64,000 nt of DNA from Macrostomum lignano (GCA_002269645.1 NIVC01000882.1:62001-126000), one strand, 5' to 3'; positions 27,074 to 59,830 are shown, counted from the stretch's first letter. Translations and numbers: made by a program. The notes: generated from the sequence alone by a model not told the origin.

Positions 27074-27387
27074 TTTCAAGTGACGAAGCTCTATTCTATT
27101 CGAATATCGCATTAGCGGGTGTATTTTATTTTAGCTATTATATATTGTTTGCATTGTAATATTTCCGTCGTTTAATTTTTCCGGATTTTTGAGAATGTTT
27201 TCGCGGTTTTTATTTGACCACTTTAGGCGAGAGATTTTTGATACTGTGCGTCAAGTATTTGTAGCATTAGTTTAAGTGATATATTTTAAGTGATATATTA
27301 ATGAAGTTAAGGTTTTGGTCAGTTTTTCTTACTTAGTTTTATGACAGGTGCAGATTTGTTGCAGATTGCGTTTTATACTTGCTAGTA

Positions 27388-28040
27388 ATGTCCGATTTTA
27401 CTTGCTCTCAATGTGGTCATCAATTCAGCAAAGCAGCCAATTTGAACCGACATCTCGAAACGACTAGATGTGGTCGCTGCTCATCTGAATCGTCTGGAGC
27501 CTTCGCGCCTCCGAGAAACGCACGAGAGGCGCTTCAGTTTCTTGCGGTCGGTGGTAAGTATGTGAAAGTTTTTTTGAACCCAAACCTTTTTCCACGAACC
27601 GCAAATGAGAAGGAGTTCAAACGTATTTGCGGTCTTAGCTATAGTGATTTCGATAGCTTCTCAGAAATGTTACCAGAAGTATCTCGCCTTCGTATTTTGA
27701 CAAAGCCATCTCGAATATTTTTGTACCTGAAGAAGCTTCGCCAAGGTTGCAGCTTTCAATCATTAGCTTTCGATTTCAACATTTCTGCCCAAAGAGCATG
27801 CGACATTTTTTGGGAGATTGCCAAGGAGCAGTACCTACGGGATCCATATCAACCGAGGTCGATAGCGTCGACTCCGATTCAGACTCTGCTTGAGGAAAAT
27901 GTAGTACGCGATCAATTTATTCTCGGTGTATTTCACACACTACTCAAAGGCAAGAAGCTTGTTCTTCTAGTGGGTGATCATACTTACTTTTATCTCCCTA
28001 AGAGCAGCTCACACCACACGCAAATTCGAACTTACCGGCT
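27388..28040 (+). pseudogene. Truncated transposase: C2H2/C2HC zinc finger, HTH (DDE_Tnp_4-associated type) and start of DDE core
   Basis: MSDFTCSQCGHQFSKAANLNRHLETTRC; IFLYLKKLRQGCSFQSLAFDFNISAQRACDIFW; LVLLVGDHTYFYLPKSSSHHTQIRTY. The ORF then runs directly into the right arm at 28041. Confidence 0.75.
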
Positions 28041-29775: not shown

Positions 29776-30420
29776 TTTTGCGTGCAGGAATTTTGCTTGC
29801 CAAATTTTGCTTGCAGGAAATTTGCTTGCCAAATTTTGCTTGCAGGAATTTTGCTTGCCAAATTTTGCTTGCAGGAAATTTGCTTGCCGAAGTTTGCTTG
29901 CAGGAAATTTGCTTGCCGAAGTTTGCTTGCAGGAAATTTGCTTGCCGAAGTTTGCTTGCAGGAAATTTGCTTGCCGAAGTTTGCTTGCAGGAAATTTGCT
30001 TGCCGAAGTTTGCTTGCAGGAAATTTGCTTGCCGAAGTTTGCTTGCAGGAAATTTGCTTGCCGAAGTTTGCTTGCAGGAAATTTGCTTGCCGAAGTTTGC
30101 TTGCAGGAAATTTGCTTGCCGAAGTTTGCTTGCAGGAAATTTGCTTGCCGAAGTTTGCTTGCAGGAAATTTGCTTGCCGAAGTTTGCTTGCAGGAAATTT
30201 GCTTGCCGAAGTTTGCTTGCAGGAAATTTGCTTGCCGAAGTTTGCTTGCAGGAAATTTGCTTGCCGAAGTTTGCTTGCAGGAAATTTGCTTGCCGAAGTT
30301 TGCTTGCAGGAAATTTGCTTGCAAGAATTTTGCTTGCTGAATTTTGCTTGCCAAATTTTGCTTGCAGGAACTTTGCTTGCCGAAGTTTGCTTGCAAGAAC
30401 TTTGCTTGCGGAATTTTGAT
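29776..30420. repeat. 29-bp satellite (GAAGTTTGCTTGCAGGAAATTTGCTTGCC)
   Basis: Direct periodicity; the long Cys/Lys/Gln-rich ORFs here are translation artefacts. Confidence 0.95.
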
Positions 30421-37887: not shown

Positions 37888-39214
37888 ATGGAGCTGCCAG
37901 ACGTGACCTACAATAAGCCCGAGTACATCGAGACCGCTTCTGGCAATAAGGTCTGCCGATTAACGGCCCTCTGTGGCAGTCAGAATATTGTACTTTCTGG
38001 CAAGGTCATCATCCAAACCGAAGCCGTGATCCGCGGCGACCTCGCCAATGTGCGAATCGGCCGCAGCACCGTCATCAGCCGGGGTGCCGTCATCCGGCCT
38101 CCGTTTAAAAAGTTTAGCAAGGGCGTCGCATTCTTCCCCTTGTACATTGGCGATCACGTGTTCATTGGCGAGAATTCCGTTATCAATGCTGCGCAGGTGC
38201 GTCTCGCCTCTGGGTGTAATGGCTTTTTGTTCTCTTTTGCTGGCCCCCACCAGCCTCCCAGATCCTCAGTTGCTGGGCGACCGCCAGCCTCTCAGATCCC
38301 CAGTTGCTGGGCCAGCCTCCCAGATCCTCAGTTGCTAGGCCAGCCTCTGAGATCCTCAGTTGCTGGGCCAGCCTCGCAGATCCTCAGTTGCTGGGCCAGC
38401 CTCGCAGATCCTCAGTTGCTGGGCGACCGCCAGCCTTTCAAATCCTCAGTTGCTAGGAAAGCCTCCCAGATCCTCAGTTGCTTGGCCAGCCTCCCAGATC
38501 CTCAGTTGTTGGGCCAGCCTCCCAGATCCTCAGTTGCTAGGCCAGCCTCTCAGATCCTCAGTTGCTGGGCCAGCCTCGCAGATCCTCAGTTGCTGGGACA
38601 GCCTCCCAGATCCTCAGTTGCTGGGACAGCCTCCCAGATCCTCAGTTGCTGGGCCAGCCTCGCAGATCCTCAGTTGTTGGGCGACCGCCAGCCTTTCAGA
38701 TCCTCAGTTGCTAGGACAGCCTCCCAGATCCTCAGTTGCTGGGCCAGCCTCCCAGATTCTTAGTTGCTGGGCCAGCCTCCCAGATCCTCAGTTGCTCGGC
38801 CAGTGCCGCCCTCCCAAGCCCCCAGTTGCTTGGCTGGCCTCCTAAATCCTCAGTTGCTGGGTCAGCCTCCCAGATCCCCATTGGCTGGACCGCGGCGGCT
38901 GCCCTCCCATATTTCTAGGCAAGCACTAGCACAAAGGTACTCTCACTGCCCATTACCAGGTGGGCTCCTACGTCCACGTAGGCAACAACTGCGTGATTGG
39001 CAGGCGCTGCGTTCTCAAAGACTGCAGCGCAGTGGCCGACGGCTCAGTCCTGCCAGCGGAGACCGTGGTGCCACCCTTCACCATATTCAGCGGCTCGCCA
39101 GGACAGCTGGTTGGCTCGCTGCCAGACTGCACACCGGAGCTCATGACTCACCTCACCGAGAGCTACTATCAGCACTTCGTGCCTGCAGCCGCGGCGGCTC
39201 CCAAAGCTAACTAA
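37888..39214 (+). CDS. DCTN5: Dynactin subunit 5 (p25). Exons 37888-38196, 38960-39214; 187 aa
   Basis: [70 protein letters not shown] (left-handed beta-helix); phase-0 intron. Confidence 0.96.
38230..38900 (+). repeat. 28-bp minisatellite (CAGATCCTCAGTTGCTGGGCCAGCCTCC) in DCTN5 intron
   Basis: Direct periodicity; same family as 39705-40205 (inverted) and 46570-47435. Confidence 0.93.
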
Positions 39215-39704: not shown

Positions 39705-40205
39705 GTCTGAGGATCTGGGAAAGTGGCAGGTGGACTAGCAACTGAGGATCTGGGAGGCTGGCCCAGAAACTGAAAATCTGGGAGGCTGGCCCAGCAACTG
39801 AGGATCTGGGAGGGTGGCAGGTGGCTCAGCAACTGAGGATCTTGGAAACTAGCGCAGCAACTAAGGATATTGGAGACTGGCCCAGCAACTGAGGATCTGG
39901 GAGGGTGGCAGGTGGCTCAGCAACTGAGGATCTGGAAAACTAGCGCAGCAACTGAGGATATTGGAGACTGGCCCAGCGACCGAGGATCTGGGAGGGTGGC
40001 AGGTGGCTCAGCAACTGAGGATCTGGGAAACTAGCGCAGCAACTGAGGATATTGGAGACTGGCCCAGCAACTGAGGATCTGGGAGGGTAGCAGGTGGCCC
40101 AGCGACCGAGGATCTGGGAGGGTAACCTGGTGGCCCAGCAACTGAGGATCTGGGAGGCTGGCCCAGCAACTGAGAATCTGGGAGGGTGGCCCAGCAACTA
40201 AGGAT
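39705..40205 (-). repeat. Inverted copy of the 28-bp minisatellite family
   Basis: GGCCCAGCAACTGAGGATCTGGGAGG is the reverse complement of the DCTN5 intron unit. Confidence 0.9.
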
Positions 40206-40543
40206 CTCAGACGTGCCCACGGGCCACCATCGATAAAAACTGTAAAATAAAAGTACCAGGTATTTAAAACATTGGTAGCCCTAGCAGTCTGGGGCCGTTA
40301 CGGCTATCCCACACCTGACTATTTAGAAAGCTTACAGAGACCGGATTCTAGGCTCCGAGGGGGTGGTGAAGCGAGCCGTCCCAGATGTGAACTCAGCAAT
40401 AGACTTCATGATAGACTCTAATCCTAGAGACACACGTTGACACTAGTCCTGACCTCTACAAAAAGTACAACAAAACGCTCTTATTCTCTACTTTCAGGCT
40501 GGCGTCCGGCCAATTTTTAGTTGCAGGCAAAAATCCAGCCGCC

Positions 40544-42555
40544 ATGTTTTGGCCTTCGTATCAAAGCCCTGTGCCCACTATAGACAGTCTGTTTAGCAGC
40601 GGCCAGCCGAACTTGATCGATGTGCTAAATGACAGCTCGGCTGTGCAAGAATGCCGCGGGTACAATGCCAAACTGGTTGATTACCTGGTGCAGGATTCCG
40701 TTTTAGACAGGTGATTATTGGTGTTGTCAATCATTAGGAAATGTTTATTTTCTAGCACCAATGTTCACTATTTTCTGCTCAGGTTAATCGATTACATAAC
40801 GGAAGATCCGGATCCCGAATTGCCGCTGCACAGTCGCTACAAATATCCCTACCTGGCGTGCGAGCTTCTCTCCTGCGATGTTGACTCAATCAACAACGCT
40901 CTGGTACGAGAAGATAGTCGGCTGGACCGGCTGTGCCAGTTCCTGCGCAGCCAGTCGCCTTTGAACCCGCTGACTGCCAGCTTTTGCTCCAAGGTGAGGA
41001 GCTGATTCGAAAGTAGTAAATGCTGACTCTTACTGTATTTTGTAGTTTAATTTTGCAAATTCAGAATTTCGAAAATTTGCTACTTGCTACTTATCCGTAA
41101 CAAATGAGTAGGATAAGAGACATGTGATTCTTTTATTAGCAATTCAAGCCATTGCCTGTTGTAACAAAAAACTCACTATTGACTTTAGCGACTCTAGGGC
41201 GACTCTGTTGAGTCACTAGCGCATCACGTGAGTTGCAGAATCGTAAAAGATTCGCAAAAAAAGTCCAAGAGTCGTTGTGTTAGTCTTCCTGAGTCGCTTC
41301 TTTGCTTTGCTATTTTACCTGTTTTAACTGCCGCAACTCTGAAACAACTCTTGGCCTAGGAGAGATGTTGTAGAGAAGAGCATACTTTGGGGTGGGCGTC
41401 CTCCGCGTGCTGATTGGCTGACAACACAGTACATATGCATGTCTACAAGATTACAGATTGTTGATACACATTGCATGCGCTGCAATGTAGGGGTGAAATT
41501 CTTGCGGTCTTGCCCACTCCCTACTCCCTACTGCTAGTAGGCAGTTGAAAAAAAAGTCGCCATAATCCCTACCTTGACAGATCCTGCAGCTGCTGGTGCA
41601 CAAGCGTCCAGACCGTCTGCTGCCGCACCTCTGCGGCCGGGCCGACCTGGCCGAATGCCTCGTTACGCACGTCGCCACCGCGGCCGTCTCCGACCTGCTG
41701 CTGTCTCTGGCCTGCGTTTGCGTCAACAGCGCCGCCAGCAAAAACGGCGGCGACGTGGCCGACGCCGAAGACGCTGCTGACGGCGACGGCGAGGCTGTGG
41801 TGGCCTCGATTCCTTCGGCTGCCGGGGACTGGCTGGCGGACACCGACCTGGTGTCCAGGCTGATCGACCGGGTCTGCTGCCGCGGCTGCGGCGACCAGCA
41901 GCTGCCCGAAGGTGCAGAAGACGACGGTGAGGTCGCCTCCGCGGCGTTCACTGCCGCCCAGTGCGCTGAGATGCTGTTGCAGCAGTGCCGTGGCGACCTC
42001 GCCATGACCAGCCAGTGTGGCATCGTCGGCGACGTCGGCGGCGGAGTCGTACCGCCGCGTCAGGGCCGCCTTCTACGCCAGTTCGAATCGCCGGACATCG
42101 CCGAGCGTCTGGTGGCCAGTGGCATCTTGCCGCCGTCATCTGCGGATGGCGGCAACGAAGCCCGGCTGACGTGCAGAGGCCAGGCCGCCCTGACTGCCGC
42201 CTGCCAGGTCGCCATCGCCCTGCTGACTCCGCCTAGCGAAGCCGGCCCTGCCCTGGCGTCCCTGTGCACCGCCCTGCGGCCCCGGCTGGACCGCCTGGCC
42301 ACCCTGCTGCGGCCTCCGGCCAGCGGCGACGGCTCCGCTGGCGTTGGCAGCGGCCGCCTCCATCTGCTGCGGCTGATGCGCGCTCTGGCAGCCTGCGGCG
42401 GGCCGGGTTTGGCTATTGTGTCCGAGACTGGGGCTGTGGCCGCTTCGCTGCGCCTGCTGCTGCTGTTCCCCTGGTGAGCGACTGCCTGTCTGTCTCTGTC
42501 TGTCTGTCTGTCTGTCTGTCTGCCTGTCTGTCTCGTCTGTCTGCCTGTCTGTCAC

Positions 42556-42616
<61 letters not shown>

Positions 42617-44432
42617 GCCTGTCTATCTGGGAATAGTTCCAGCATTTCTGTCTCATCTGCCCCCATCACTGATTCAGTCGAATTCACTCCGCCACCAACC
42701 CCTTCCCAGGTGCTCCTTCCTGCACCAGGTCGCCGAGCAGCTGTGCCTCTGCGCCCTCGCCTACCCGGCCGGCTTCTCCCAGCCTGATGCCGCCGTGCGG
42801 CGTAGCCTTCAGCGTCAGCTGATTCTCAATCGGCGAGAAAAGCAGTCTCTGAAGCAGGAGCAACAGGAGCAGCAACAGCAACAACATCCTGTCGCAGGTT
42901 CCATCGAAGCTGCCAACACCGAAATCGACGCCGACTGCCGTCTGCCTGCCGTGCTGCTGGCCGCCGCCGAGTGCAACCGGGCCGCCCAGGCTGCGGGCTC
43001 GGCGAGACGCGGCTACATGGGTCACGTGATCCGCCTGGCCAACTGCCTCAACGCCTGTCTGGCCGCCGCCGCTCCAACCGCCGCAAACCGCGACAACAAT
43101 ACGTCAACTGTCGATTCCGACGCCACTGACGATGAGGCGGAGAGTCTGGCCGACCTGTTCAACCAGTTGGAGCCGGAGCTGCTGCATCGCTGGTCGGAAT
43201 GGTGTCAGTCTGAGGTGGCCGACGCCAACACTCGCTGCGTTTTCACGGCCGCCGTTGAAGCCCACAACGACGGGGACGACGAAGACGAGGCCGAGTTCAA
43301 TTTTTCCGCACCGCCGTCGCCTCACCGCGCGATGCAGACGGCCTACGTTGAGTTTCAGGCCAGGCAGCTCAGCGCGCCCATGCCTGAGCAGTTCGGCTTC
43401 CAGGAGGACGACTTTAATGAGGCTTACGAGCTATCGGCTGGTGCCGACTTGCCCCAGGATGTTAGTGGCTGGCCCGCTTGTCTGCTTTGTTTTTTACCGA
43501 TTTTACCCCTCCCTGATCCCCCATCTGAGCCCCTCCCTGATCCCCTCCATGAGCCCCTCTCTGATCCCCCATCTGAGCCCCTCCCTGATCCCCCATCTGA
43601 TCCCCTCCCTGATCCCCCATCTGAGCCCCTCCCTGATCCCCTCCATGAGCCCCTCTCTGATCCCCCATCTGAGCCCCTCCCTGATCCCCCATCTGATCCC
43701 CTCCCTGATCCCCCATCTGATCCCCTCCCTGATCCCCCATCTGAGTCCCTCCCTGATCCCCCACCTGATCCCCTCCCTGATCCCCCATCTGAGCCCCTCC
43801 CTGATCCCCCATCTGATCCCCTCCCTGATCCCCCATCTGATCCCCTCCCTGATCCCCCATCTGAGCCCCTCCCTGATCCCCCATCTGAGCCCCTCCCTGA
43901 TCCCCCATCTGATCCCCTCCGTGATCCACAGGCTGCAGCCCTTTCCCCAGTGCTCACGATGGCCCTCCCAGATCCCAAGCTATACCAGTCTAACATCGGC
44001 TTTTGGCAGGTGGCGCAGCACCTCACAGATTTCTGCACTCCAACTCCGGAGGACTCGATCAGGGCCGCCATGTTCGATCAGGCCTGCAACTCGCGCATTC
44101 TGCGATACGAATCAGCCGACGACGACAACGACGACGCCGCCGACGATTCTGCCGGTGCCGCTGAGTACTACAACGACGTCTATGGCGATGGCGATGACGC
44201 TAACGGCGCAGATGTCGCCGATTCTGGCATGCCATTGGCTAGCAACGGCGGCACGGACGTCGGGCACGCGGAGGACAATCGGTGGGCTTTGAATTCGATC
44301 AGCGAGGAGGAGCCGGTGGTGTTGAAAGCCGCTGCAGCTGCGGCAGCCATCGGCGCCGCCTACGCCGCCGTCAACGGAGAAGGCGTCGGTGCGGCATTCC
44401 CCGAGATTGACTGCGTCGATCCGCTGGCTTAA
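40544..44432 (+). CDS. Protein phosphatase 6 regulatory subunit (SAPS/SIT4-associated family). Exons 40544-40710, 40783-40993, 41581-42473, 42710-43460, 44010-44432; about 814 aa
   Basis: MFW start, QECRGYNAKLVDYL, RYKYPYLACELLSCDV, SPLNPLTASFCSK, FPWCSFLH, RRGYMGHVIRLAN and an acidic tail. All introns are GT-AG with consistent phases; 2445 nt. PPP6R1/2/3 cannot be distinguished. Confidence 0.88.
42484..42625. repeat. (CTGT)n microsatellite in the PP6R intron
   Basis: Direct. Confidence 0.95.
43515..43930. repeat. 24-bp minisatellite (CCCTCCCTGATCCCCCATCTGAGC) in PP6R intron 4
   Basis: Direct periodicity. Confidence 0.95.
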
Positions 44433-46569: not shown

Positions 46570-47435
46570 ACAGATCCTCAGTTGCTGGGCCAGCCTCTCA
46601 GATCCTCAGTTGCTGGGCCAGCCTCCCAGATCCTCAGTTGCTGGGCCAGCCTCCCAGATCCTCAGTTGCTGGGCCAGCCTCCCAGATCCTCAGCTGCTGG
46701 GCCAGCCTCCCAGATCCTCAGTTGCTGGGCCAGCCTCCCAGATCCTCAGCTGCTGGGCCAGCCTCCCAGATCCTCAGTTGCTAGGCCAGCCTCCCAGATC
46801 CTCAGTTGCTGGGCCAGCCTCCCAGATCCAGATCCTCAGTTGCTGGGCCAGCCTCCCAGATCCAGATCCTCAGTTGCTGGGCCAACCTCCCAGATCCTCA
46901 GTTGCTGGGCCAGCCTCCCAGATCCTCAGTTGCTGGGCCAGCCTCCCAGATCCTCAGTTGCTGGGCCAGCCTCCCAGATCCTCAGCTGCTGGGCCAGCCT
47001 CCCAGATCCTCAGTTGCTGGGCCAGCCTCCCAGATCCTCAGCTGCTGGGCCAGCCTCCCAGATCCTCAGTTGCTGGGCCAGCCTCCCAGATCCTCAGCTG
47101 CTGGGCCAGCCTCCCAGATCCTCAGCTGCTGGGCCAGCCTCCCAGATCCTCAGTTGCTGGGCCAGCCTCCCAGATCCAGATCCTCAGTTGCTGGGCCAAC
47201 CTCCCAGATCCTCAGTTGCTGGGCCAGCCTCCCAGATCCTCAGCTGCTGGGCCAGCCTCCCAGATCCTCAGTTGCTGGGCCAGCCTCCCAGATCCTCAGT
47301 TGTTGGGCCAACCTCCCAGATCCTCAGCTGCTGGGCCAGCCTCCCAGATCCTCAGCTGCTGGGCCAGCCTCCCAGATCCTCAGTTGCTGGGCCAACCTCC
47401 CAGATCCTCAGCTGCTGGGCCAGCCTCCCAGATCC
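46570..47435 (+). repeat. 28-bp minisatellite, same family as the DCTN5 intron repeat
   Basis: Direct periodicity. Confidence 0.95.
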
Positions 47436-47444
47436 TACACTACA

Positions 47445-49465
47445 CTACAGACCAGGACAATCTGGCTCCAGCCCTGTCAGTAGAGACTCAGAATGACGGA
47501 AGACCACGGGAGCTATTCCTCCGCCTCATTGGGTGAGGAGGGCGTGTTGTCGAAGGTCCTTGGGTTGCACTAAGAAATCTGATCGGACGTGTTCGTGCTT
47601 CGGTTCTCACCACCAGAGGAGTTACTCAGAGCTACGCAATCCAAGCGAGTCATGCTACAGCTTCTGGCTCGTGTCTATGATCCTCTCGGCTTCCTAGTTC
47701 CACTGCTGACTTGGCTGAAAACAATGTTTCAGACGCTCTGTGTTCGCAAAGTTGCTTGGGATTGCCCGCTGGATGAGCCGACTGAACAGCTGTGGCAGAA
47801 GTGGCTGCAGGACATGCTGAAAGCGCGATTACAGGTGCCGCGGCTAGTGCTTTTCGCGACACGGGTGGTCCAAGAGATGTAGCTTCATGGCTTCTGTGAC
47901 GCATCCGCAAAGTGCTTGTCTCTACCTACGATTTCAGTACACCGACGGTTCCGTCAGCTGTACCCTGGTGGCGGCGAGGGCCAGAGTGGCTCCACTATCG
48001 GCCCTGTCGATTCCTCGGCTGGAACTGGTGCACTGATACTGGCCAGACTAGTGATTTCAGCCGAGTGAGCGAGTGAGATAGTGCCGATACTCTCTACTGG
48101 ATACGACAGCACAAGCCCTGGAAGCTCTTTATTCACAACCGAGTCGAGTCTCTGAGATCCGCCTGCTGCTTCCGGAGGAATCATGGCGACACGTGCCAGG
48201 CAATGAGAACCCTGCCGTTGTTGCATCTCGCGGCACTTCGGTCGACAAGCTGAAGACTGATACCAGCTGGTGGCATGATCCTGATTGGCTGACTCGACCT
48301 CCAGAAGGCTGGCCTGACCAATCCTTTCTCAATCCAACCTCAGCAACAGCAGACGAGGAGCAGAAGCCATCAGCAGGCAAATCAATCGTTCTACTCACTG
48401 ATGTTGTTCCGGACTTGGGACTGCATTGAGTTATACCAAATTCGGATTTCTAAGCTCATTAGGGTGACAGCTTACGTCTTTCGATTTGTCAAGAACCTAC
48501 AAGTTCGAACTTCCAGAAGCACGAGTATAAACAGAAGCAGAGGAGCGTTGGCTGAAAGAGGTACAACGAAGGAGTTTCCCTGCTGAGATTGCTCACTTTG
48601 AAAGGTCGACAGCATCTGCGGACCTCGCAAAGCAGCTGAATCTCTTCCTCGACAGCAAAGGTCTGCTCCGAAGTCGGGGTCGATTGAGAGACTCAAACGT
48701 TGGTTCAGCTGCTGATTGCCCCATCCTCATCCCGAACAAGACGAATCCAGAAGTTCTCCTCATCCGAGACGTGCACAGCAAAGTTCTGCACGGGGGAGTT
48801 CCAAGCACCCTTTGCAAACTGCGTGAGAAGTTTTGGCTGATCCGTGGCAGGCAGCGAGTGAAGGCAATTCTTAGAAAATGCGTCGTCTGCAGGCGTCTTC
48901 AGGCACTCCCGTTCGCTGTGAAGCAAGTTCCTGCGTTGCCAGAATCTCGCGTGAAAGCAATAAGAGATTTCGAGTGGAGCGGGCTCGACTACTGTGGTCC
49001 GGTCAAGCTGAGAGAAGACACTGCTGTCGAGAAGGGCTACATCTTAGTGTTCACCTGCGCAGCAACGCGAGCGCTTCGTCTAGAACTGGTGAAAGATCTA
49101 ACAACTGAGCCCTAAGGAGATTCTGTGCAAGGAGAGGTATTCCTAGTCTCATCAGCGATAAAGCTAAGACATTCAAAGCCGTGCGGAAATTGCAAGCATC
49201 GGAGAGGTAAAAGGTTCAGGAGTTCTGCGCCACTCGGAGTTCATCACGGAACGCGCGGCCTGGCAAGGAGGCTTCTGGGAGCGACTGATGAAGGACATCA
49301 AGCTGGTAATGCGTAAAACCACTGGACGAACTGCTGACACTGCTCATGGAGGTGGAGGCGGTGCTCAACAGCCGCCCTATGCTCTACGTAGATGCCGAGC
49401 CCGAAGGAGAAGTTCTGACACCGGCACACTTCCTGGTGTTGCAGCGGCTGACAGCGAAGCCTACT
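47445..49465 (+). mobile_element. Degenerate BEL/Pao LTR retrotransposon pol fragment (end of RT, RNase H, integrase)
   Basis: KVLGL, ARVYDPLGFLVP, LHGFCDAS, ARVAP...IPRLEL, HVPGNENPA..ASRG, HGGVPSTLCKLREKFW...CVVC, GLDYCGP, VFTCAATRALRLELV, GGFWERL, EVEAVLNSRP, LTPAHFL. Many stops and frameshifts; no LTRs seen. Confidence 0.92.
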
Positions 49466-49800: not shown

Positions 49801-50406
49801 TCTGCATCTCAGCATTTCAATCTGACGTTCATTCTGCGCACTCAGTCTAATGCTGCCTACTGCTTTGTTCTATCTTTTTTGTCTATGGCTAAACCCTCGC
49901 AGCTTGAAAGTAATGATTAATCAATACTCACCGAAAGCTTTTATTCCTCTAAAAACAAGCTGCGATTTCACAACCCCCCCGGGCCAGTTTAGAGTGAGGT
50001 CCAGATCCGATGCTGTTCAAAATCGTATTGCTAATTTCGTAGGTTCGTCAGTAAATGATCGATTGCTTTCGTTCTGTCTATACGACCAAGCTGAAACTCT
50101 AGCACTGAATTCATCAAAATATAGACCCATGTTTGTATAAATTCTCATCAAAATCGGTCAAACAGATGCAGAGATATGAGGGGTGTCTAAGAACTTTTTG
50201 AATGCACTAAGGTATTTAATGATGCAATAAAATAAGAGTCAACTGATGTAAAATAATTCATAAATTTAACTTAATTTTACTGGAATTTTACTGACAGAAA
50301 AACAAACTTTTGTCCCGGGATTCGGAACGTTAAATCCCTTGATCACCAATCCTAGGATTGCGATTCCTAGTTTAATTCAATCAATTCAAAAGTGGAACTG
50401 ATATCC

Positions 50407-51177
50407 TTATTTTGGAGCCATAAAGTTGACTAATTTAGAAAGAATTGAAAAAATATTGTCACCGCTGTTCCGCCTCGCTTCCTCCAACAATTTTTGGATG
50501 TCGTTTTCGAGTTTTACCATCGCCCTGTGAGCCTCTTCATTCGACTGTCGCAAGTTTTTCACCTTTTCTCTGAGAGTTGCTACATCACTACGCAGCTGCA
50601 AATGGTCCACTTCATTCGACTGTCGCAAGTTATTCACCTTTTCTCTGAGAGTTGCTACATCACTACGCAGCTGCAAATGGTCCACTTCATTCGACTGTCG
50701 CAAGTTATTCACCTTTTCTCTGAGAGTTGCTACATCACTACGCAGCTGCAAATGGTCCACTTCCTTCGACTGTCGCAAGTTATTCACCTTTTCTCTGAGA
50801 GTTGCTACATCACTACGCAGCTGCAAATGGTCCACTTCCTTCGACTGTCGCAAGTTATTCACCTTTTCTCTGAGAGTTGCTACATCACTACGCAGCTGCA
50901 AATGGTCCACTTCATTCGACTGTCGCAAGTTATTCACCTTTTCTCTGAGAGTTGCTACATCACTACGCAGCTGCAAATGGTCCACTTCCTTCGACTGTCG
51001 CAAGTTATTCACCTTTTCTCTGAGAGTTGCTAAATCACTACGCAGCTGGTCCACTTCATTTGACTGTCGCAAGTTTTCCACCTCTTGTCTGAGAGTTGCT
51101 ACATCACTAAGCAGCTGCAAATAGTCCATAGCAACCATTCCCACTATGCCGCATAGTATGAAACCCAGATACTGCAT
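50407..51177 (-). CDS. Orphan protein, 256 aa: hydrophobic N-terminus, eight about 25-aa coiled-coil repeats, RR site and amphipathic tail (paralog of 58228-58503)
   Basis: Open ORF with a 75-bp coding repeat. Strong acceptor (ttctctaccatttcag, exon starts 51194) and a conserved upstream donor at 55192/55191; homologous to the second copy. Confidence 0.65.
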   Translation of the reverse strand: MQYLGFILCGIVGMVAMDYLQLLSDVATLRQEVENLRQSNEVDQLRSDLATLREKVNNLRQSKEVDHLQLRSDVATLREKVNNLRQSNEVDHLQLRSDVATLREKVNNLRQSKEVDHLQLRSDVATLREKVNNLRQSKEVDHLQLRSDVATLREKVNNLRQSNEVDHLQLRSDVATLREKVNNLRQSNEVDHLQLRSDVATLREKVKNLRQSNEEAHRAMVKLENDIQKLLEEARRNSGDNIFSILSKLVNFMAPK

Positions 51178-51865
51178 TGCTCACTGTTCAGAGTCTGAAA
51201 TGGTAGAGAAAAGTGCTGTAGTGGTTTAGCTCGAGATTACGCACTCGAGTTTATTCATATTATTGTTAAGCAATGCGCCCAGTTTCAGTTAAAAAAAAAG
51301 TAAGTTATAGACCGCTCCAGTATATTTATATGTACTTGGCTGACAACAACAACAACAAAACAACAAAATACGCGGCCCTTCGAGCAAAAGGTCACAGTTA
51401 GAGCAGGGCGTGTCAGATGGCGCGCCGCAGAGCCTGGGAGCGAACAAAGTCCGCTCCGTTGGCAGTGTCGGGCGCCCCAGCGTCGCACAGCAGGCAGTCC
51501 ACGTATCGACGGGTTCGACTTGGCTGAACTAATCGTTAGTCACTACGAGCTACGACATCCACGACACATAGAGCTGTGCACGTAACATATAATGTTGTCA
51601 TCTAGAAAAAAGTACTTTTTATTTTGCAAGCCCATTCTCTTCTGCCAATCTCCGGCTCCAGCCAGCCTTCTGTCAGTCTCTCTGTCGCTCTCTGTTCCAC
51701 ATCCTGCAATCAGCTTTTTCATTCATTCTTCTGACAGCCAAGGACCTTGCGGCGATAAAACTCTAAGAGTTAGATAAAAGTTTGTTAGAACTCTGTTTTC
51801 ATTTCTGGCTAGGCGCAACTGAATTGCTATACTCGTAAGGATATTGTTTAGACATTTACATACTC

Positions 51866-53170
51866 TATTGTCATTAATTTTTGCGGGCTTAAGCGTCCCT
51901 TTTCCGGGCGTCAATGTGGCAATTCGTGCCTTGAATTGTCTATGGTATTTTTTATTTCAGTAATAGAGCGAAATAGAACAACAGTGTGAAACAGAGGCAA
52001 ACAAATAACAGCAGAAGTTAATGTTAATGTTAATCTCTGGGCGACTGAGACAGAAGAAGCGATGCAGTCCGGCTCTAATGCAGATGAGACTTGCTGGAGC
52101 ATAGTACCGCTCGTCCTTTGTTCGCAGTGTCGAATAGAAGAAACGCAAATAATTAGCCAGAATCGACTTTGGAATTCGCAGCAGATCCGTTGACAGTTTC
52201 ATTTCTTCCAGAAAAGTCTTGAAGCGGCTCACATTGTCCTCCATCTGCCGGGCGGAGGAGTCCGGTATTCCATCTCGTTCAAGCTGATTTAACTCTTGCA
52301 TCACATCTGCCGGGCGGAGGAGTCCGGTATTCCATCTCGTTCAAGCTGATTTAACTCTTGCATCACGTCCTCCGGAATGTCGAGAATCTCTTCTGATTCT
52401 AACTTGCGCGCAAATTCTTCGCTCAGTTCCTCCAAATACCGGCTGTTCGACTCGGATGATACCCACGCCAGCTCTTCGGTCGACATACCGGAAACCATTT
52501 CTCCCGGCAGATTGGAATAATTAATTAAATGGTTGATCATTTTCAGAACTCAAGCACAGCTTAGTCCTGACAGATTTGAAAAAATATACATTTAGCATTT
52601 TTCTAGCTCCTTCAGTTTTACTGTCCATCTCTAGACCTGGACCATCAAGACTTCGTCTATGGCCCAGAGCTCGCAAATCAAAAGAAAGAATGGCCATAGA
52701 CATTTCAACTGCATTCTACGTAATAACACAGAGCCCGGAATTTTCGACATTGATGCCCGGAAATCTCTTGCATTAATGACAATAATATAAACATTACTTT
52801 TTGCGGGGTAATGCGCCCTCACAAAATTCTACATTGTCGGCTGATTTTCCATGCAAGAATGGCATTCTTGCACTCTTTTGCGTGCAGGAATGGATGTCTA
52901 TGGTAAAATCTCACTGAAAAAGCATTAGGCGCAGAAATGCATTCCTGCACGGTTTTGTGCATTCCTGCACGATGAATCATCCGACAATGGAATTCCTTCA
53001 CGTTCACTCGTGCGTGAAGGACATCGTGCACTCGTGCGCTAGCGCGCACTCGTGCAGGAATGGATGTCTATGGTAAAATCTGCACGATAGCGCGCACTCG
53101 TGCAGATGTCATTCCCGCACTCGTGACCGTGCAGGAATCTATCATTGATGCCCGCAAAAAGTAATATTAA
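51866..53170 (-). mobile_element. Crypton-like (tyrosine recombinase/DUF3504-type) element fragment with short inverted motifs
   Basis: ILANYLRFFYSTLRTKDERYYAPASLICIRAGLHRFF resembles the Crypton/DUF3504 L..FY...R.KDG..Y...SL..IRA motif. Inverted ATTA(A/C)TTTTTGCGGG motifs near 51875, 52793 and 53150; repeated CACTCGTGC. Confidence 0.55.
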
Positions 53171-53771
53171 TGTTATATAGACATTTTTGTGCATATTTCT
53201 GCCATCTTGGTCTCAGATTGCTTGAAAGAAGCCTCACTTAGCTCGCAAAACCTACCTTCGCAAAGTGACGCTATTAGCTCGTATACTCTCAATATTACTC
53301 TCAATAACTCAATATTATCAAAGAAGTTCACTTACTCGGGTTACGCCTTGCTTACTCGCAGTTTTTGTACTTGTAAATTGTAATTATACTGTACTTTAGT
53401 CACGGATGATGCTTTTGTAATATAGTCTAGCACTGTAGCTTTGGCAACCGTTAACAGCAATATGCAGCTGTTCTAAACGAAAAACGAAAATCCTAGGCCA
53501 CTCACTTTTTATGTACGAAACGGGATTTATTTTTAGCCTGTGCTCTGCGGTCACTTGATTGGTACACGGGCCTGCTCAACCAAACTGCTCACCCAGAAAA
53601 GCTATAGCCTATATTATACATGCGCATTACAGGCACGTACTAGCGGGGTAGAGAAGACTCATCCCCCCAGTAGACAGGCAAAAATGATGACGCGCCCCTG
53701 ATTCTGTTTCCCAATTTGGAAGTTCCCCAATTTTCGCTTTCGACTGCCATCGCAACAGAGGTACATGCATG

Positions 53772-55043
53772 CAGTGGCGTAGCTAGGATTTTGAAATGGG
53801 GGGATAACTGGAAGGGAAAAACTTGCAATCAAATAAAATAGTTTTTTGTGATTTTTGCTTTACATTTGCATTTAAAAAGTACCAGCAGTATTAATATTAA
53901 TAGGCTAAAAAACCTTTTAATTTGTTAAAATCAGAATAAAAGACATCAGACATCGGGATCGAGATTCGCGGGATTCGCAGAAACATCGTTTAAAACATTT
54001 TAATAATAATTTACTAGTGAAAAACATTTTTATTGCATTTTTTGGTATATTTTTCTAAATCTGAAGCCGCTTTATTTTGATTTTTTTCAAAAAACCTCAC
54101 TTTCCTTTCCTATTGCTATCTGGGTGGATGCTTGCTATCTTGGTGGATGCTTGCTATCTGGTGCATGCTTCTACAATATTTGGGGGGGGGTGCTTGCTAT
54201 CTGCAGATGCTTGCTATCTAGGTGGATGCTTCAACAATATCTGGGGGATGCTTGCTATCTGCAGATGCTTGCTATCTAGGTGGATGCTTCAACAATATCT
54301 GGGGGATGCTTGCTATCTGCAGATGCTTGCTATCTGCAGATGCTTGCTATCTGGGTGGATGCTTGCTATCTGGGTGGATGCTTGCTATCTGGGTGGATGC
54401 TTGCTATCTGGGTGGATGCTTGCTATCTGGGTGGATGCTTGCTATCTAGGTGGATGCTTCAACAATATCTGGGGGATGCTTGCTATCTGCAGATGCTTGC
54501 TATCTGGGTGGATGCTTGCTATCTGGGTGGATGCTTGCTATCTAGGTGGATGCTTCAACAATATCTGTGGGATGCTTGCTATCTGCAGATGCTTGCTATC
54601 TGCAGATGCTTGCTATCTGGGTGGATGCTTGCTACGAGTATTAGGGGATGCTTGCTATCTGCGGTTGCTTACTTTTGGAGGGGGATGCTTGCTATCTGAA
54701 GGGATGCTTGCTGTCTTAGGAATATTTTCTATTTAGGGGAATGTCTGTTATCTTTGTGAAAGCTATATTTAGTTGTCTGTTTGTTAATCTTAGAAAAAAG
54801 AGATTCATAGCAAATATCATTGTCCGTGACAATTTTACATGAAAAAGGTGATTTATAAAAGTGAATAAGGAATTAGTGTTTAAGAAAAAGTGCTTTTTTA
54901 ATTGTTTTCCATGAACTATTTTTGCTCCTTGCTTATTGGGCGCCCCGAAAAGGGGCCGCACTAGATTGCTAGTTTGTTTCCTATAAATCATTAAAATGGG
55001 ATGATACCCGGTATATATACGTATCCCCCCAGCTACGCTACTG
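53772..55043. mobile_element. Non-autonomous hAT-like element (TIR CAGT(G/A)GCGTAGCT) containing a 19-bp minisatellite
   Basis: CAGTGGCGTAGCTAGG at 53772 and AGCTACGCTACTG ending 55043; empty site present in the paralogous block near 60175-60195. Confidence 0.8.
54110..54715. repeat. 19-bp minisatellite (GATGCTTGCTATCTGGGTG variants)
   Basis: Direct periodicity. Confidence 0.92.
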
Positions 55044-55570
55044 TGTACATGCATGCGTGATGAAGCAAAGCAGAGCTGAAACTGTGTAATGAAATACAGA
55101 AGAATTTACGACTAAACGGAACTGCTCACAAAAGGTTTAAAAAATTGAAGTCACTTTTTCTATTCGCTATTGTCTGTTAGTACTTACTTACCTGACGCAT
55201 CCTGACCGCATGACTTTACTTTTATGGGCTGCGTCTTTTGTTCTTGTTATTCCGTTTAAAATACATGTACATTTATGTTCTCTCGGCTTTCTAATGCAAG
55301 CTGTAGACTTTTCGACTCCCGAACCCATCCCGAAGGTAAACGTCTTAGTCAACCGAGTCCAAGCAGTGAGTCTCAAAGCTATAAGGTTTGCTTTGCCTTA
55401 TGTAAAAAGCTTGATAAAAGATTCAATGAATTACAATTGCAATTAGTAAATAAACTAGCACAATAGGCCCCCATGGTGGGCATTCAAATTCAAAATTCAA
55501 ACATTGAAAGCACATTAATATACATCACTTTTTCGAATATTTGAACCACTTCCAATCGGTATAAATTTTA

Positions 55571-57463
55571 CAAGGGCTATCCCAAAAGTAAGTTTCGCTA
55601 TTTTATAAAATTTATTAATAGCTTAAACAAGAGGCACTGGCCATATACAAGCCTACAGTCTATATGGTAAAGAAGAATGACAAGTTTCAAAGTGCTATCA
55701 TGTTCACAAGCTGCAGAGCATCACTTTAATCAAATAAACTTTTGTAAATATGCCCTCGTCAGCTTCGTTCACTCGGTTTGACGTTTCGCAACAGTGCGCA
55801 AGTGGGTTCGTGAGGTCCAGGGACGGAAACTGTGCATTGAAGATGAAGAGCGCTCCTCTGGAAGGCCGAGAACAGCAACAACAGACACAAATTCCGAGCG
55901 TGTGAAGGATTAATGTGTTCCTTATTACCAGACTTTCTCTGTAATCAAGGAACAATCACTTCTAGCTACTTTGCTAGGCAACCAAGTTATCAAATGAAGG
56001 TACTGCTTACCTTGACTTCGTGTGAGATATCTCTTCTGTTGGTCTCGCAGTAGGTCTCGTGCAGATCTCGTGTAGAATCTCTCCTTGTCTTCCGGAAGAA
56101 TTAACAACTTGACTCTGTTGTTCTGGTCCTGTCTCTTCTGGTACTTCCGATGAAGTCGTTTCCGGCCGGTATCTGCAGTCAGGACCAATCAGAGGCCTCG
56201 TATCAACAATGGGATCCCTGCGCCGAACTGCGGTTTCACTTAAGCCTTCTCCTTCTAGCAGTGCCTCAATGCACTCTAGGTATTGCTCCGGTAATCACTG
56301 ATAGATCTTCTAAGAGCTATCAGGGTAGTCCTTCTGGAGACTACGACCAATAGAGTCACAAATGGACTCAAGAGTCTGAACAGACTCTAACACTATAACA
56401 ATAGTGAGTCGACTCAACAACTGGCGCAAATGACCAAGGTTACCGCAACAAATCGACCAAGTCTCGATTGACTTGGTGACTAGGAAGACTCTCTAAAGCT
56501 TCCTCTTCGGAGCGCTCCTCTTCCGTGGGGAGAAGGACTCCGGTACCGCTTTGGACTGCTTGTATTTATAGACGATTTTGCAGGCCAAAATAGTAAAATG
56601 ACTCTTGGGTTGCGCTAAAAAAAGTAACATTACTCATTGCGGCTATTATTAGTAACATGATTCATTCTGCTGCTATAAATAGTAACATGATTCATCGTTA
56701 AGGTTTAGGTGCGCATGTGTGCACTAGTCTACTTACAGTACCATTCTATGATTAACAATTTTACTTCTTTTTGTGGGAGGTAGAACACTCTACAGGATAT
56801 TCTGTCACTGAATCCTGGACATCTCCCACAGCACGGTGCGTTGCATCCCAACAGAAAACCTAGACATGCAGAAGATCTTCCCCAAGTGAAGATTCAAGAG
56901 TTCAATGAAGGTGATGCACATCATCTTCTTCGACGCCCATGGCATTCTGGAGGACTGGCCTGTGCCAGTCGGTACCAAGGTGAATGCGGAATATTACAAA
57001 TGAATTCTGCAAGAGAAACTGCAACCGGCGATCAGAAAGAATCGACCTGGCTTGCTGGAGAGAGGCGTCATCTCTCATCACGACAATGCGCCTGTGCACC
57101 GCGCCAGAAGAGTGGAAGAGCTTCATGGAGTCCTGGGACTGAGAAGTTCTTCTTCAGCCGCGCTATTCGCCTGACTTGGCTCCGGCAGACTTCTACATTT
57201 TCCCAAGGATGAAGAAGGGTCAACGTTTTGCCTCGGTGGAACAAATTAATAACAGTGCTTCATCAGCTCTCCGGCATCTGACCATTGGCGGTTGCAGCCC
57301 TGCCTTTGAGGCGTGGGTGCGCGGCTGGGAGAAGTGCGTTGACCTCAGCGGCAAATTTGTACAGTAACTATGAGTTCATTTTGCAGTTGCAAAGTTTTGT
57401 TGATTGTTGGGTCACTAGTTAGTCTTTTATAGCATAAGCGAAACTTACTTTTGGGATAGCCTT
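55571..57463 (+). mobile_element. Defective mariner element with an internal insertion
   Basis: TIR GGCTATCCCAAAAGTAAGTTTCGCT at both ends with TA at 55569-70. KVMHIIFFDAHG, HHDNAPVH, YSPDLAPADFYIFPRMK and WEKCVDLSGKFVQ* across stops and frameshifts. Confidence 0.9.
55701..56830 (-). mobile_element. Putative solo LTR inserted in the mariner
   Basis: On the minus strand it begins TGTGGGAG and ends TGAACA; TATAAATA at 56570-56563 and ATTAAA about 25 nt before the end. No TSD found. Confidence 0.45.
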
Positions 57464-58227
57464 AGATACCAATTTGCCAAATGAATCTGAATTAATTGGG
57501 TCCATCAGCTACTGCCCCCTCTGCAACTGCAAAATTGCTCCGCCCTCTGTTGTGAAAAAAAGAACACAAAACAAGATCAGAGCAATTTAGGGGGTCGATG
57601 AAAAAGGCTCCGTTTTGTCCTTCGTGTTGCTTTCCGAGACAACTAAAATCCAAAGACGGAACTTTAAGTTTTTAATAAATCTACCAGTAGATTCTATCTA
57701 CAGTTCTAAATTTCGTGTTTAGCTTTTCAATTTATTTTTATTTTGGCCAAATCACGCAGCAATATTTTTGTTTCGGAAACATCATATTGGTCTTGTTGAT
57801 TAAATGATGCATAATTCACAACTGTAAAGTATTAATTAATCAATAAAAATTATCTCGATCTACTACAGATCATGAGTTTACTCTCTCAAACAAAAAATAA
57901 CTAACAGAATACTACTAATAAAAAACTATGAACGGATCGAATTAATTCATCAAGTTTACAAAAGCGTTAGCAAAAATTCTGTGTGAGCGGGAGAATCCGA
58001 GCGATTTAATGTTTAAAGCGAAATTTATAGCGAAAATTTATACGGTTTGACGCCGTACGAGCTATAAAGTATGAATGATGCACCAATATGAAGAAACAAA
58101 TGATGTAAAAATACCAAATCCAGTTCAATTTTTCTTGATTTTTCGTGAAACTATAACAAAATTTTGTCCCGGGACTTCAAATAATTCCTTGATTTCCTAG
58201 TATCGGATTGCGATCCTTAATTCATAA

Positions 58228-58503
58228 TCAGCTCAAAAGTGGAACCCATTTTTTGATTTTCGACGCCACAGCATTGACTACTTTAAAAAGAAAGGGAAAG
58301 CCGTTCCAGCCGTTTCGCCTCGCTTCCTTCAACTCCAACAATTTGTTGTTTTGAAGTTTTATCATCGCCCTGTAAGCCTGTTCATTTGACTGTCGCAAGT
58401 TTTTCACCTCTTGTCTGAGAATTTCTATATCACTGCGCATGTGCAGATAGTCCATAGCAACCATTCCCACTATGACGCACAGTATGGAGCCCAGATATTG
58501 CAT
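58228..58503 (-). CDS. Orphan 91-aa protein: hydrophobic N-terminus, single coiled-coil unit, RR site and cationic amphipathic tail (paralog of 50407-51177)
   Basis: Intact ORF; conserved acceptor (exon starts 58520) and upstream donor at 60344/60343. Confidence 0.65.
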   Translation of the reverse strand: MQYLGSILCVIVGMVAMDYLHMRSDIEILRQEVKNLRQSNEQAYRAMIKLQNNKLLELKEARRNGWNGFPFLFKVVNAVASKIKKWVPLLS

Positions 58504-58680
58504 TGCTCACTATTCAGAGTCTGAAATGGTAGAGAAAAAGTGCAAGTGGTTTAAGCTAGAGATTACGCACTCGAGTTTATTCATATTGCTGAGTATTGCA
58601 GTTGCAGTTGAGAAGAAAGTGAGTAATAAACTGCTCCAGTAAATTGCATTGATATGTACTTGGCTGGACAGCCACGAAAT

Positions 58681-59830
58681 GGGTCACCGACTTTTCACTG
58701 CCACAGTTTAACTCCTGGACCTTTGACTGCCAGACTTTTGACTGCCGGCGACTTTTGACTGCCAGACTTTTGACTGCCGGACTTTTGACTGCCAGACTTT
58801 TGACTGCCGGACTTTTGACTGCCAGACTTTTGACTGCCAGACTTTTTGGCTGCCAGACTTTTGACTGCCAGACTTTTGACTGCCAGACTTTTGATTGCCG
58901 GAAATACCACATTATACTTGTTCTTATTTATGATTAGTTAGTACTTTTAATCAATAAGCGATCGATAAATGAATACGAATTCGCTAATTCAGTCATCATT
59001 AGTCGTAACTGTGAATTAGTCAATTAGTAATTATAAGTTAACAATAACAACAATCTTAGAAATAAGACTTGTTTATTATTGTTGAGATGCCCCAAAAACC
59101 TTTGGAATGGGGAAATTAAACCTACTAAATTCATATTCTCAGAATTATTCAGGGATTGAAATATCTTCTGCAGCCATTTCATGGGCTGACGTCTCATATA
59201 TTTACTCATTCACTATATTCACTCGCTATCACTACATGCTGTTTCTGTGCCTCCCTCGTAAAAAGATCTCCTTCCACCTATTCAAGAATCTCCTGCATCG
59301 CCCAAGTAAACTGTCCTCTGGCTCCGTTCTGTAGATTCTCCTCCCAGCCCAACTGTAAAATGAAAAGATGACTAGGCAGTCAAAAGTCTGGCAGTCAAAA
59401 GTCTGGCAGTCAAAATCGCTGGCAGTCAAAAGTCTGGCAGTTAAAATACCGGCAGTCAAAAGTCTGGCAGTCAAAAGTCTGGCAGTCAAAAGTCTGGCAG
59501 TCAAAAGTCTGGCAGTCAAAAGTCTGGCAGTCAAAAGTCCGGCAGTCAAAAGTCCGGCAGTCAAAAGTCCGGCAGTCAAAAGTCCGGCAGTCAAAAGTCC
59601 GGCAGTCAAAAGTATGGCAGTCAAAAGTATGGTAGTCAAAATCGCTGGCAGTCAAAAGTCTGGCAGTCAAAAGTCTGGCAGTCAAAAGTCTGGCAGTCAA
59701 AAGTCTGGCAGTCAAAAGTCCGGCAGTCAAAAGTCCAGAAGTCAAAAGTCCAGAAGTCATTGTGGCAGTCAAAATCGCCGGCAGTCAAAAGTCCAGAAGT
59801 CAAATTGTGGCAGTCAAAAGTCGGTGACCC
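58681..59830. mobile_element. Non-autonomous foldback-like element with arms of 15-bp units (CTTTTGACTGCCAGA) in inverted orientation
   Basis: Termini GGGTCACCGACTTTT(C/G)ACTGCCACA inverted at both ends; arms 58681-58900 and 59370-59830 around an about 470-bp non-coding spacer. Confidence 0.85.

Follow-up and report, generated by a model that had tools for sequence, protein, structure and literature searches.

What do two short, related genes on the minus strand of one Macrostomum lignano locus encode? We addressed this question in a 64,000-nucleotide stretch of the M. lignano assembly (GCA_002269645.1 NIVC01000882.1:62001-126000; hereafter the window). An initial annotation of this DNA had pointed to a gene pair, here called A and B, and had proposed a lineage-specific family of secreted peptides, with a membrane-anchored coiled coil as the alternative. 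The two genes are as follows.

50407-51177, minus strand: gene A, a 256-amino-acid (aa) intronless open reading frame (ORF), an unannotated paralogue with an expanded zipper array and a shortened tail
58228-58503, minus strand: gene B, a 91-aa intronless ORF, an allele of M. lignano Mlig020770

We read both genes as encoding a product of the secretory pathway whose C-terminal amphipathic helix would be the working part. It is possible, though far from assured, that this product is a precursor cut after an Arg-Arg (RR) site, which would free a membrane-active peptide of 28-29 residues.

The gene pair and its duplication

Two ORFs with a common start had been claimed at 50407-51177 and 58228-58503, and both were confirmed on the minus strand; each begins with MQYLG(F/S)ILC(G/V)IVGMVAMDY. 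In B, this start is followed by the zipper unit LHMRSDIEILRQEVKNLRQSNE, a non-repeated helical segment QAYRAMIKLQNNKLLELKEARR and the tail NGWNGFPFLFKVVNAVASKIKKWVPLLS. Gene A has the same plan, with the first zipper unit amplified in frame. The non-repeated segment, 18 aa long and placed between the unit(s) and EARR in both proteins, was absent from the initial description, and the order of EARR followed by an amphipathic tail was confirmed for A and B alike. Each product looks like essentially one long alpha-helix, predicted to comprise a hydrophobic N-terminus, a zipper stalk, an RR-N hinge and a cationic amphipathic C-terminal helix. Inspection of the proteins by eye showed no glycosylphosphatidylinositol (GPI) signal, N-glycosylation site, KDEL, CaaX or SKL.

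Homology between A and B begins ~165 bp upstream of the start codon and ends ~250 bp beyond the stop codon; their likeness is a genuine duplication at the DNA level and not a chance resemblance. The duplicated unit is ~0.75 kb long and includes the putative proximal promoter or outron and the putative 3′ untranslated region (UTR).

Two further contigs of the assembly, NIVC01000808.1 (L001) and NIVC01000158.1 (L002), are collinear with the window at 96-98.5% identity, and the B-then-A pair is present in all three. The genome of M. lignano is neopolyploid and comprises three subgenomes (PMC10733133), and blocks with an identity of 95% or more account for 180 Mb of its assembly (PMC5730564). The best reading of the window, L001 and L002 is that they represent a single locus in three subgenome or haplotype versions. 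No further gene copies were found in the window, L001 or L002.

Hydrophobic start, dibasic site and amphipathic tail

The elements on which the reading of a secretory product depends were located as follows.

58447-58503, minus strand: hydrophobic segment of B, MQYLGSILCVIVGMVAMDY, a candidate signal peptide or signal anchor, with the top Kyte-Doolittle windows of B
51121-51177, minus strand: hydrophobic segment of A, MQYLGFILCGIVGMVAMDY, from hydropathy and a coordinate check
58315-58320, minus strand: dibasic RR of B within EARRN, the same in 6/6 copies
50470-50475, minus strand: dibasic RR of A within EARRN, from a coordinate check
58228-58314, minus strand: tail of B, NGWNGFPFLFKVVNAVASKIKKWVPLLS, plus stop; net charge +4, hydrophobic moment 0.51
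50407-50469, minus strand: tail of A as now read, NSGDNIFSILSKLVNFMAPK, plus stop, truncated; moment 0.48, charge +1
50381-50417, minus strand: 1-bp deletion between 50416 and 50417, then the open ancestral frame SKIRISVPLLN, with TGA at 50381-50383

The shared hydrophobic start is 19 aa long. Its uncharged stretch comprises 15-17 residues, with Met-Gln before it and Asp after it, and its hydrophobic core of ~15 residues begins at residue 1-3; this length suggests a signal peptide more than a membrane span. The leader is the best-conserved part between the paralogues, with a non-synonymous divergence (dN) of 0.07 and a ratio to synonymous divergence (dN/dS) of 0.25. The hydrophobic segment is followed by 15 residues with a net negative charge (D18, D25, E27 and E32 against R23 and R30). 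By the positive-inside rule, the main part of the protein is thus expected on the lumenal or exterior side, with the leader either cleaved or retained.

The claimed layout of leader, spacer, RR and cationic amphipathic helix is present in both proteins. EARRN is unchanged in all six gene copies of the three locus versions, including the Asn after RR, while the adjoining positions vary, and the dibasic site stands directly before the candidate mature peptide. In a single-sequence AlphaFold2 (AF2) model of B, the per-residue confidence (pLDDT) dips just after RR, suggesting a hinge at this position.

Hydrophobic moments were taken over 18 residues. The results showed a moment of 0.55 and a net charge of +2 for the intact A tail of L001, so that the tails cover moments of 0.48-0.55 and charges of +4 (B), +2 (A of L001) and +1 (A of the window), as in a cationic amphipathic helix; magainin 2, computed alike as a control, gave a moment of 0.51. 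B and the intact A of L001 have the tail core K..VN.VASKI..VPLL in common. Of their last 17 residues 12 are identical, while the 10 residues after RRN are nearly all different. The tail carries 3-4 Lys/Arg and is amphipathic, with neither a GPI-signal-like nor a span-like hydrophobic run, and it could bind a membrane surface.

The A tail of the window had been described as ending in NFMAPK. It is amphipathic, and it has been shortened by the 1-bp deletion, which is present in A of the window and of L002 and not in A of L001. The full A tail of L001, …NFVASKIRISVPLLN, corresponds to …AVASKIKKWVPLLS of B. Since the most conserved tail motif of the family is lost in two of the three locus versions, A is probably drifting or decaying.

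Zipper segment and the repeat array of A

The spacer between the hydrophobic start and RR was delimited in both genes, and the array of A was compared among the locus versions.

58321-58446, minus strand: leucine-zipper segment of B, aa 20-61, one basal unit plus the non-repeated segment, from a heptad count
50535-51128, minus strand: in-frame 75-bp coding minisatellite of A, eight units including the basal one, one of them 69 bp, from Tandem Repeats Finder (TRF)
Window 50535-51128, L001 15009-15650 and L002 16417-17181: A stretches compared for unit composition

In the B zipper, core hydrophobic residues occupy 62% of the a/d positions against 21% elsewhere, and Pfam gave generic coiled-coil matches only, such as DivIC, all below threshold. 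For A, TRF reported a 75-bp period, 8.0 copies and 95% matches. The 75-bp repeat, first described as one unit against eight units of 25 aa, was thus recovered by TRF, but the A units are not all 25 aa long: the array consists of the basal unit, one 23-aa unit and six 25-aa units (VDHLQLRSDVATLREKVNNLRQS[N/K]E). Within one A unit, 71% of the a/d positions are core hydrophobic against 11% elsewhere. Across units the pattern is lost (33% against 26%), because each 25-aa unit equals three heptads plus 4 residues. The AF2 model of A is of low confidence (pLDDT 60), and its helices are interrupted at the unit junctions, in agreement with the loss of heptad phase.

A also matched Pfam PF03954 (Lectin_N) at 52.7 bits (cut-off 28.3), with several repeat stretches summed on stalk positions 59-128. 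We rejected this match and those to BicD and LPP as coiled-coil repeat summation; they disappear for B and for a one-unit A, and A has no lectin domain.

The array differs between the locus versions, with eight units in the window, six in L001 (213 aa) and eight in L002 (254 aa), and 23- and 25-aa units are combined differently from one version to the next. In the window, every 25-aa unit has HLQ (TTG), as against HSQ (TCG) in those of L001 and L002. Apart from this, the window and L002 are nearest to each other and have the frameshift in common, yet they differ in this array state. Because unit number, make-up and the HLQ/HSQ state all differ between locus copies, the array behaves as a fast coding minisatellite that is homogenised array-wide, and the HLQ/HSQ pattern suggests that the locus copies have undergone unequal exchange or conversion with one another. 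Tandem repeats make up 15% of the M. lignano genome (PMC5730564). Given this repeat-rich genome, the varying number and make-up of units, the homogenisation, the phase loss and the breaks in the AF2 model, the eight-fold expansion of A is probably a tolerated, near-neutral by-product of slippage. It resembles other coding minisatellites (in-frame variable number tandem repeats) in its near-identical in-frame 75-bp units, their varying number and composition and their whole-array homogenisation, but differs from them in that its unit is a three-heptad zipper derived from the first unit of the gene, and not low-complexity Ser/Thr/Pro sequence.

Flanks, annotation and transcription

The duplicated flanks and the acceptor-like motif in them are placed as follows.

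58504-58671, minus strand: 5′ flank of B, homologous to that of A at 78% identity, putative promoter or outron
57970-58227, minus strand: 3′ flank of B, homologous to that of A at ~64% identity, putative 3′ UTR
51178-51345, minus strand: 5′ flank of A, homologous to that of B, with TATAAATA at ~-150, which is not conserved in B
50150-50380, minus strand: 3′ flank of A, homologous to that of B
58521-58536, minus strand: acceptor-like TTCTCTACCATTTCAG of B, ending 17 nt 5′ of the ATG
51195-51210, minus strand: acceptor-like TTCTCTACCATTTCAG of A, ending 17 nt 5′ of the ATG

The 5′ flanks of A and B from the window and from L001, four copies in all, were aligned, and the alignment contains blocks that are identical across all of them. 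The initial annotation had taken conserved splice signals as support for real genes. One acceptor motif, TTCTCTACCATTTCAG, is indeed kept identically in the four copies, but a cis donor to go with it is not apparent. We rejected an intron spliced in cis within the 5′ UTR, as the only conserved upstream GT (GTACAT/GTGCAT, ~-150) misfits the M. lignano donor GT[G/A]AG. In this species, the acceptor consensus for trans-splicing of the spliced leader (SL) is [T/C]TNCAG, and ~30% of genes receive the 35-nt leader (PMC8629364). Since TTCTCTACCATTTCAG fits this consensus and no fitting cis donor was found, it is plausibly an SL trans-splice acceptor. One caveat is that, as read from the sequence, the terminal AUG brought by SL addition would open an out-of-frame upstream ORF of 17 codons over the start codon.

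B is 97% identical to PAA76609.1 (Mlig020770g2) and to Mlig020770g1, both recorded as 'hypothetical protein'; one gene copy is thus known already under that name. The M. lignano annotation rests solely on RNA sequencing (RNA-seq) and a de novo transcriptome (PMC5730564). As its GenBank model stems from this annotation, B is transcribed, which bears out the claim of a real gene. No annotated gene was found at the homologous place of A in L001 or L002. The submitters dropped transcripts overlapping repeat annotations (PMC5730564), so the absence of A from GenBank is no evidence of silence.

A phmmer search of B against 1,835,955,588 protein representatives returned only B itself. A word-indexed search of B in 5.8e9 proteins returned one cluster, consisting of the two M. 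lignano proteins Mlig020770g1/g2, and the A-type protein of L001 gave nothing at E <= 0.01 in the word-indexed search. Searches of the PDB with B and both tails yielded chance matches only (GWNG in propeller lectins, E 0.016-0.9), with none for the A tail. The proposed lineage-specific family thus agrees with the phmmer and word-indexed searches, which gave no match beyond M. lignano, and on this sequence evidence the family is a taxonomically restricted orphan of M. lignano, with the caveat that other Macrostomum genomes and transcriptomes may lie outside the searched libraries. As a control, the M. lignano ribosomal protein RPLP0 was itself missing from the 5.8-billion-protein collection, where the best match to the RPLP0 exon of the window was a fish protein at 71% identity. 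Coverage of M. lignano in the collection is patchy, and absences there are uninformative; missing transcript-derived records were for this reason dismissed as evidence against expression.

Constraint among the gene copies

Comparison of A from L001 with B gave a dN/dS of ~0.5 overall (Fisher p ~0.05). A breakdown by region, suggested along with the initial annotation, gave the leader value reported above and values of 1.4, 0.58 and 0.38 for the first unit, the final helical segment and the tail, respectively. The synonymous divergence (dS) is uneven, at 0.1-0.3 in the 5′ two-thirds against 0.87 in the tail, and the 5′ part is much more alike between the paralogues than the tail, synonymous sites included. 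Such unevenness suggests that the 5′ part has undergone gene conversion. With the recent 1-bp deletion in A excepted, the older indels of the coding sequence (CDS) all have lengths divisible by three (3 bp, whole 75/69-bp units, a two-codon shift in the linker), whereas the flank indels measure 5, 4, 3, 14, 3, 4, 3, 1 and 3 bp. Taken together, the sequence comparisons give moderate evidence of selection at the protein level, and the constraint is weak; the recent evolution of the pair looks neutral.

Two possible readings: cleaved precursor or membrane-anchored zipper

In the precursor reading, the N-terminus would bring the protein into the secretory pathway with the remainder facing the lumen or the outside, and the zipper would oligomerise the precursor. 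A dibasic-specific convertase would then cleave after RR in the hinge and free the membrane-active peptide. This reading draws on the signal-peptide-like length of the leader, the position of EARRN at the predicted hinge, the pattern of a conserved 5′ part and a diverged peptide, and the moment and charge of the tail. Preprodermaseptins and other antimicrobial peptide (AMP) precursor families have a conserved 5′ part and a diverged peptide. Gene conversion would explain the gradient from conserved 5′ part to diverged tail equally well.

Several observations weigh against a cleaved precursor. To our knowledge, a zipper propiece is no feature of AMP precursors. Classical AMP precursors have an anionic propiece that neutralises the peptide, whereas residues 20-63 of B hold 10 K/R against 6 D/E (net +4) and the 25-aa unit of A is neutral, with 4 acidic and 4 basic residues. 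The B tail has an internal KK that the same class of protease could cut, and the C-termini, …PLLS and …PLLN, have no Gly for amidation. In the tail, which has diverged most, dN (0.33) lies below dS, the sign of purifying selection and not of diversifying or positive selection. The loss of the conserved tail end from A in two of three locus copies counts on the same side, as does the fact that the identifier Mlig020770 has no occurrence in the literature and M. lignano supplements searched. The remaining points of this kind concern the N-terminus and the recent evolution of the pair, and are given with the two alternatives that they favour.

The first of these alternatives, the coiled coil anchored in the membrane that the initial annotation had named, is doubtful when taken by itself, but it is about as likely as the precursor reading. 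The start would be an uncleaved signal anchor, with the N-terminus cytosolic and the remainder lumenal or extracellular, and the zipper would form a parallel dimer or trimer stalk in register with the membrane helix. The tail would lie on the same or an opposing membrane, the whole would serve as a small scaffold or tether, and RR would merely be part of a hinge. The AF2 model of B is one helix from residue 2 to residue 89 (mean pLDDT 84.5), and its leader runs into the zipper at high confidence (84-95 to residue 60, across the hydrophobic/zipper junction), as in bitopic membrane proteins, although single-sequence AF2 models tend anyway to draw continuous helices. G5, C9 and G13 are unchanged in all six copies, and this small-xxx-small spacing (G5-x3-C9-x3-G13) resembles the helix-packing motif of membrane spans. 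By inspection, no site in the leader fits the -3/-1 small-residue rule at a normal leader length: a cut at A16|M17 would put Met at -3, a cut at M17|D18 would put Met at -1, and G13|M14 would leave a leader of 13 residues. The high conservation of the leader also speaks for an anchor, as does N40 at an 'a' position; Asn at 'a' is typical of in-register dimeric zippers. The sub-threshold DivIC match covers residues 15-63 and is an analogy of architecture only.

Several features weigh against an anchored tether. A type II tether would have a span of ~20 hydrophobic residues with a basic flank, whereas the core found here comprises just ~15-17 uncharged residues, no cytoplasmic residue beyond M-Q, no basic flank and no K/R on the N-terminal side, and its Kyte-Doolittle value over 19 residues is ~1.5 (hand calculation), just under the usual threshold for a membrane span. 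Such a tether would also have a continuous stalk of conserved length. The single stalk of B is continuous, but in A the stalk has 6-8 units, varying by two units (~50 residues) with the phase broken at each unit, which is hard to reconcile with a spacing role. The conserved end of the A tail, moreover, is gone in two copies.

Remaining alternatives

Lower in probability, and unlikely, is a young gene or proto-gene that is transcribed but has no selected protein function, its ORF having come through a duplication largely by chance and by gene conversion; a hydrophobic start and helices would then be default properties of young ORFs. Among the three locus versions, substitutions are as frequent in the CDS (0-2.5%) as in the flanks (0-3.1%), and the coding changes comprise 10 non-synonymous and 2 synonymous substitutions and 1 frameshift. 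In a simulation, both ORFs survived 49 random substitutions with p = 0.11, which is not significant. The GC content at third codon positions is 0.48-0.54, between the local non-coding GC and the 0.70-0.75 of RPLP0, DCTN5 and the galactosyltransferase exon in the window, so that codon bias is weak. The lack of homologues in the protein searches and the uneven dS, with its suggestion of 5′ gene conversion, are also in keeping with such a gene. Against it stand the paralogue dN/dS, which is lowest at the two ends of the protein, and the older CDS indels, which are in frame while those of the flanks are of mixed length. The tail core, conserved at 12/17 residues despite a dS of 0.87, the unchanged EARRN and the identical blocks of the 5′ flank also argue for a selected gene.

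A reversed orientation is very unlikely. It would have the N-terminus translocated and the zipper and tail in the cytosol, as a coiled coil anchored to an organelle, where the tail would bind another membrane or a lipid droplet. No basic residues precede the hydrophobic segment, and such amphipathic helices frequently bind membranes on their cytosolic face, but the net-negative 15 residues after the segment contradict the positive-inside rule in this orientation. That the ORFs are chance products of a transposable-element or satellite piece is hardly credible: the setting amid minisatellites and degenerate transposons is repeat-rich, but the protein cluster has just two annotated members, located on two different Mlig_3_7 contigs, further copies are absent from the window, L001 and L002, neither terminal repeats nor transposase similarity were found, and there is a gene model based on transcripts.

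Comparison with known systems and possible meaning

The closest likeness to the precursor reading is found in linear AMP precursors of the preprodermaseptin and Hydra arminin type. They share with A and B the short orphan form, the hydrophobic leader, the spacer, the dibasic site directly before a C-terminal cationic amphipathic helix of ~28 residues, and a leader and spacer that are more similar between paralogues than the peptide region. A and B differ from them in having no homology to them, a basic or neutral zipper spacer where theirs is acidic, no canonical signal-cleavage site, and tail selection that is purifying and not diversifying.

Bitopic zipper proteins (FtsB/DivIC, BST-2/tetherin and the stalks of hepatic lectins) are alike in an N-terminal helix continuous with a heptad zipper, tetherin also in a second, C-terminal membrane-seeking element, and the sub-threshold DivIC and repeat-boosted Lectin_N matches in Pfam belong to this likeness. 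A and B differ in their shorter hydrophobic segment without a basic cytoplasmic flank, in a stalk length that is not conserved, and in the absence of a GPI signal, a lectin domain and homology. Flatworm neuropeptide prohormones resemble the pair in small size, leader and dibasic site before a C-terminal peptide, but A and B have no C-terminal Gly, a long amphipathic peptide, a zipper spacer and no similar protein beyond M. lignano. The dibasic-flanked peptides of such prohormones usually have a C-terminal Gly for amidation, and relatives occur in other flatworms; with C-termini lacking Gly and no relatives in the protein searches, the pair does not fit this pattern.

The precursor reading can be carried one step further. 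B may give rise to a membrane-active peptide, antimicrobial or cytolytic, that would be the first gene-encoded one known from a macrostomid, and its precursor would have a leucine-zipper propiece of an unusual kind, while A would be in the course of in-frame minisatellite expansion and decay; as a whole, we consider this proposal unlikely. Our literature search returned no paper tying Macrostomum to gene-encoded antimicrobial peptides of this sort. The zipper propiece would perhaps silence the amphipathic peptide, or sort the B precursor into granules, until RR is cut. If the proposal is true, B would be the first candidate innate-immune or secretory effector peptide for M. lignano, a transgenic flatworm model, and an example of a coiled-coil propiece. 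Whatever the function, the locus offers a natural experiment, with a young gene in three subgenome copies, a homogenised minisatellite that changes length and a fresh frameshift. Uncharacterised orphans with weak constraint are common in the M. lignano genome.

Surroundings of the gene pair

Two features were observed between A and B. A 1.3-kb insertion at 51876-53175 is present in the window and L002 and not in L001; its ends carry inverted TTTTTGCGGGC / GCCCGCAAAAA, and within it are a perfect tandem duplication of 62 bp (52242-52366) and an ORF that lacks a Pfam match. Degenerate mariner/Tc1-like transposase remnants, interrupted by stops and frameshifts, lie on the plus strand within 55399-57440 (at ~55750-55930 and ~56890-57370) and gave a weak DDE_3 match. 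The part at 55399-56616 is absent from L001 and L002 and represents an indel between locus copies.

Just upstream of B, a 15-bp minisatellite, GACTTTTGACTGCCA, occupies 58689-58902, and a second, inverted array follows ~500 bp on, at 59375-59822; these 15-bp arrays are much longer and rearranged in L001. The minisatellite density of the window is extreme, with 69 TRF rows per 64 kb (overlapping rows included) and periods of 3-228 bp. Several arrays recur in both orientations; one example is the 28-bp CAGATCCTCAGTTGCTGGGCCAGCCTCC family (38250-38888, 39707-40207, 46571-47436), which lies in part within long ORFs.

A large palindromic repeat structure was found at 25102-30418. It contains 161-bp satellite arrays of ~11 copies each, inverted with 99% matches, at 25192-27073 and 28041-29771, which are bordered by 29-bp arrays. 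An ORF within the palindrome (27379-28077, plus strand) gave weak, sub-threshold Pfam matches to zf-C2H2 and HTH_Tnp_4, suggesting the N-terminus of a Harbinger/PIF-like transposase.

Further conserved genes and elements near the pair were as follows.

2145-2516: galactosyltransferase exon
13297-13842: tetratricopeptide repeat (TPR) protein
32121-34333: ribosomal protein P0, two exons seen
37888-38220: dynactin subunit 5
42264-44432: long ORF, weakly matching SAPS and containing a 24-bp coding repeat
48684-49115: retroelement integrase fragment

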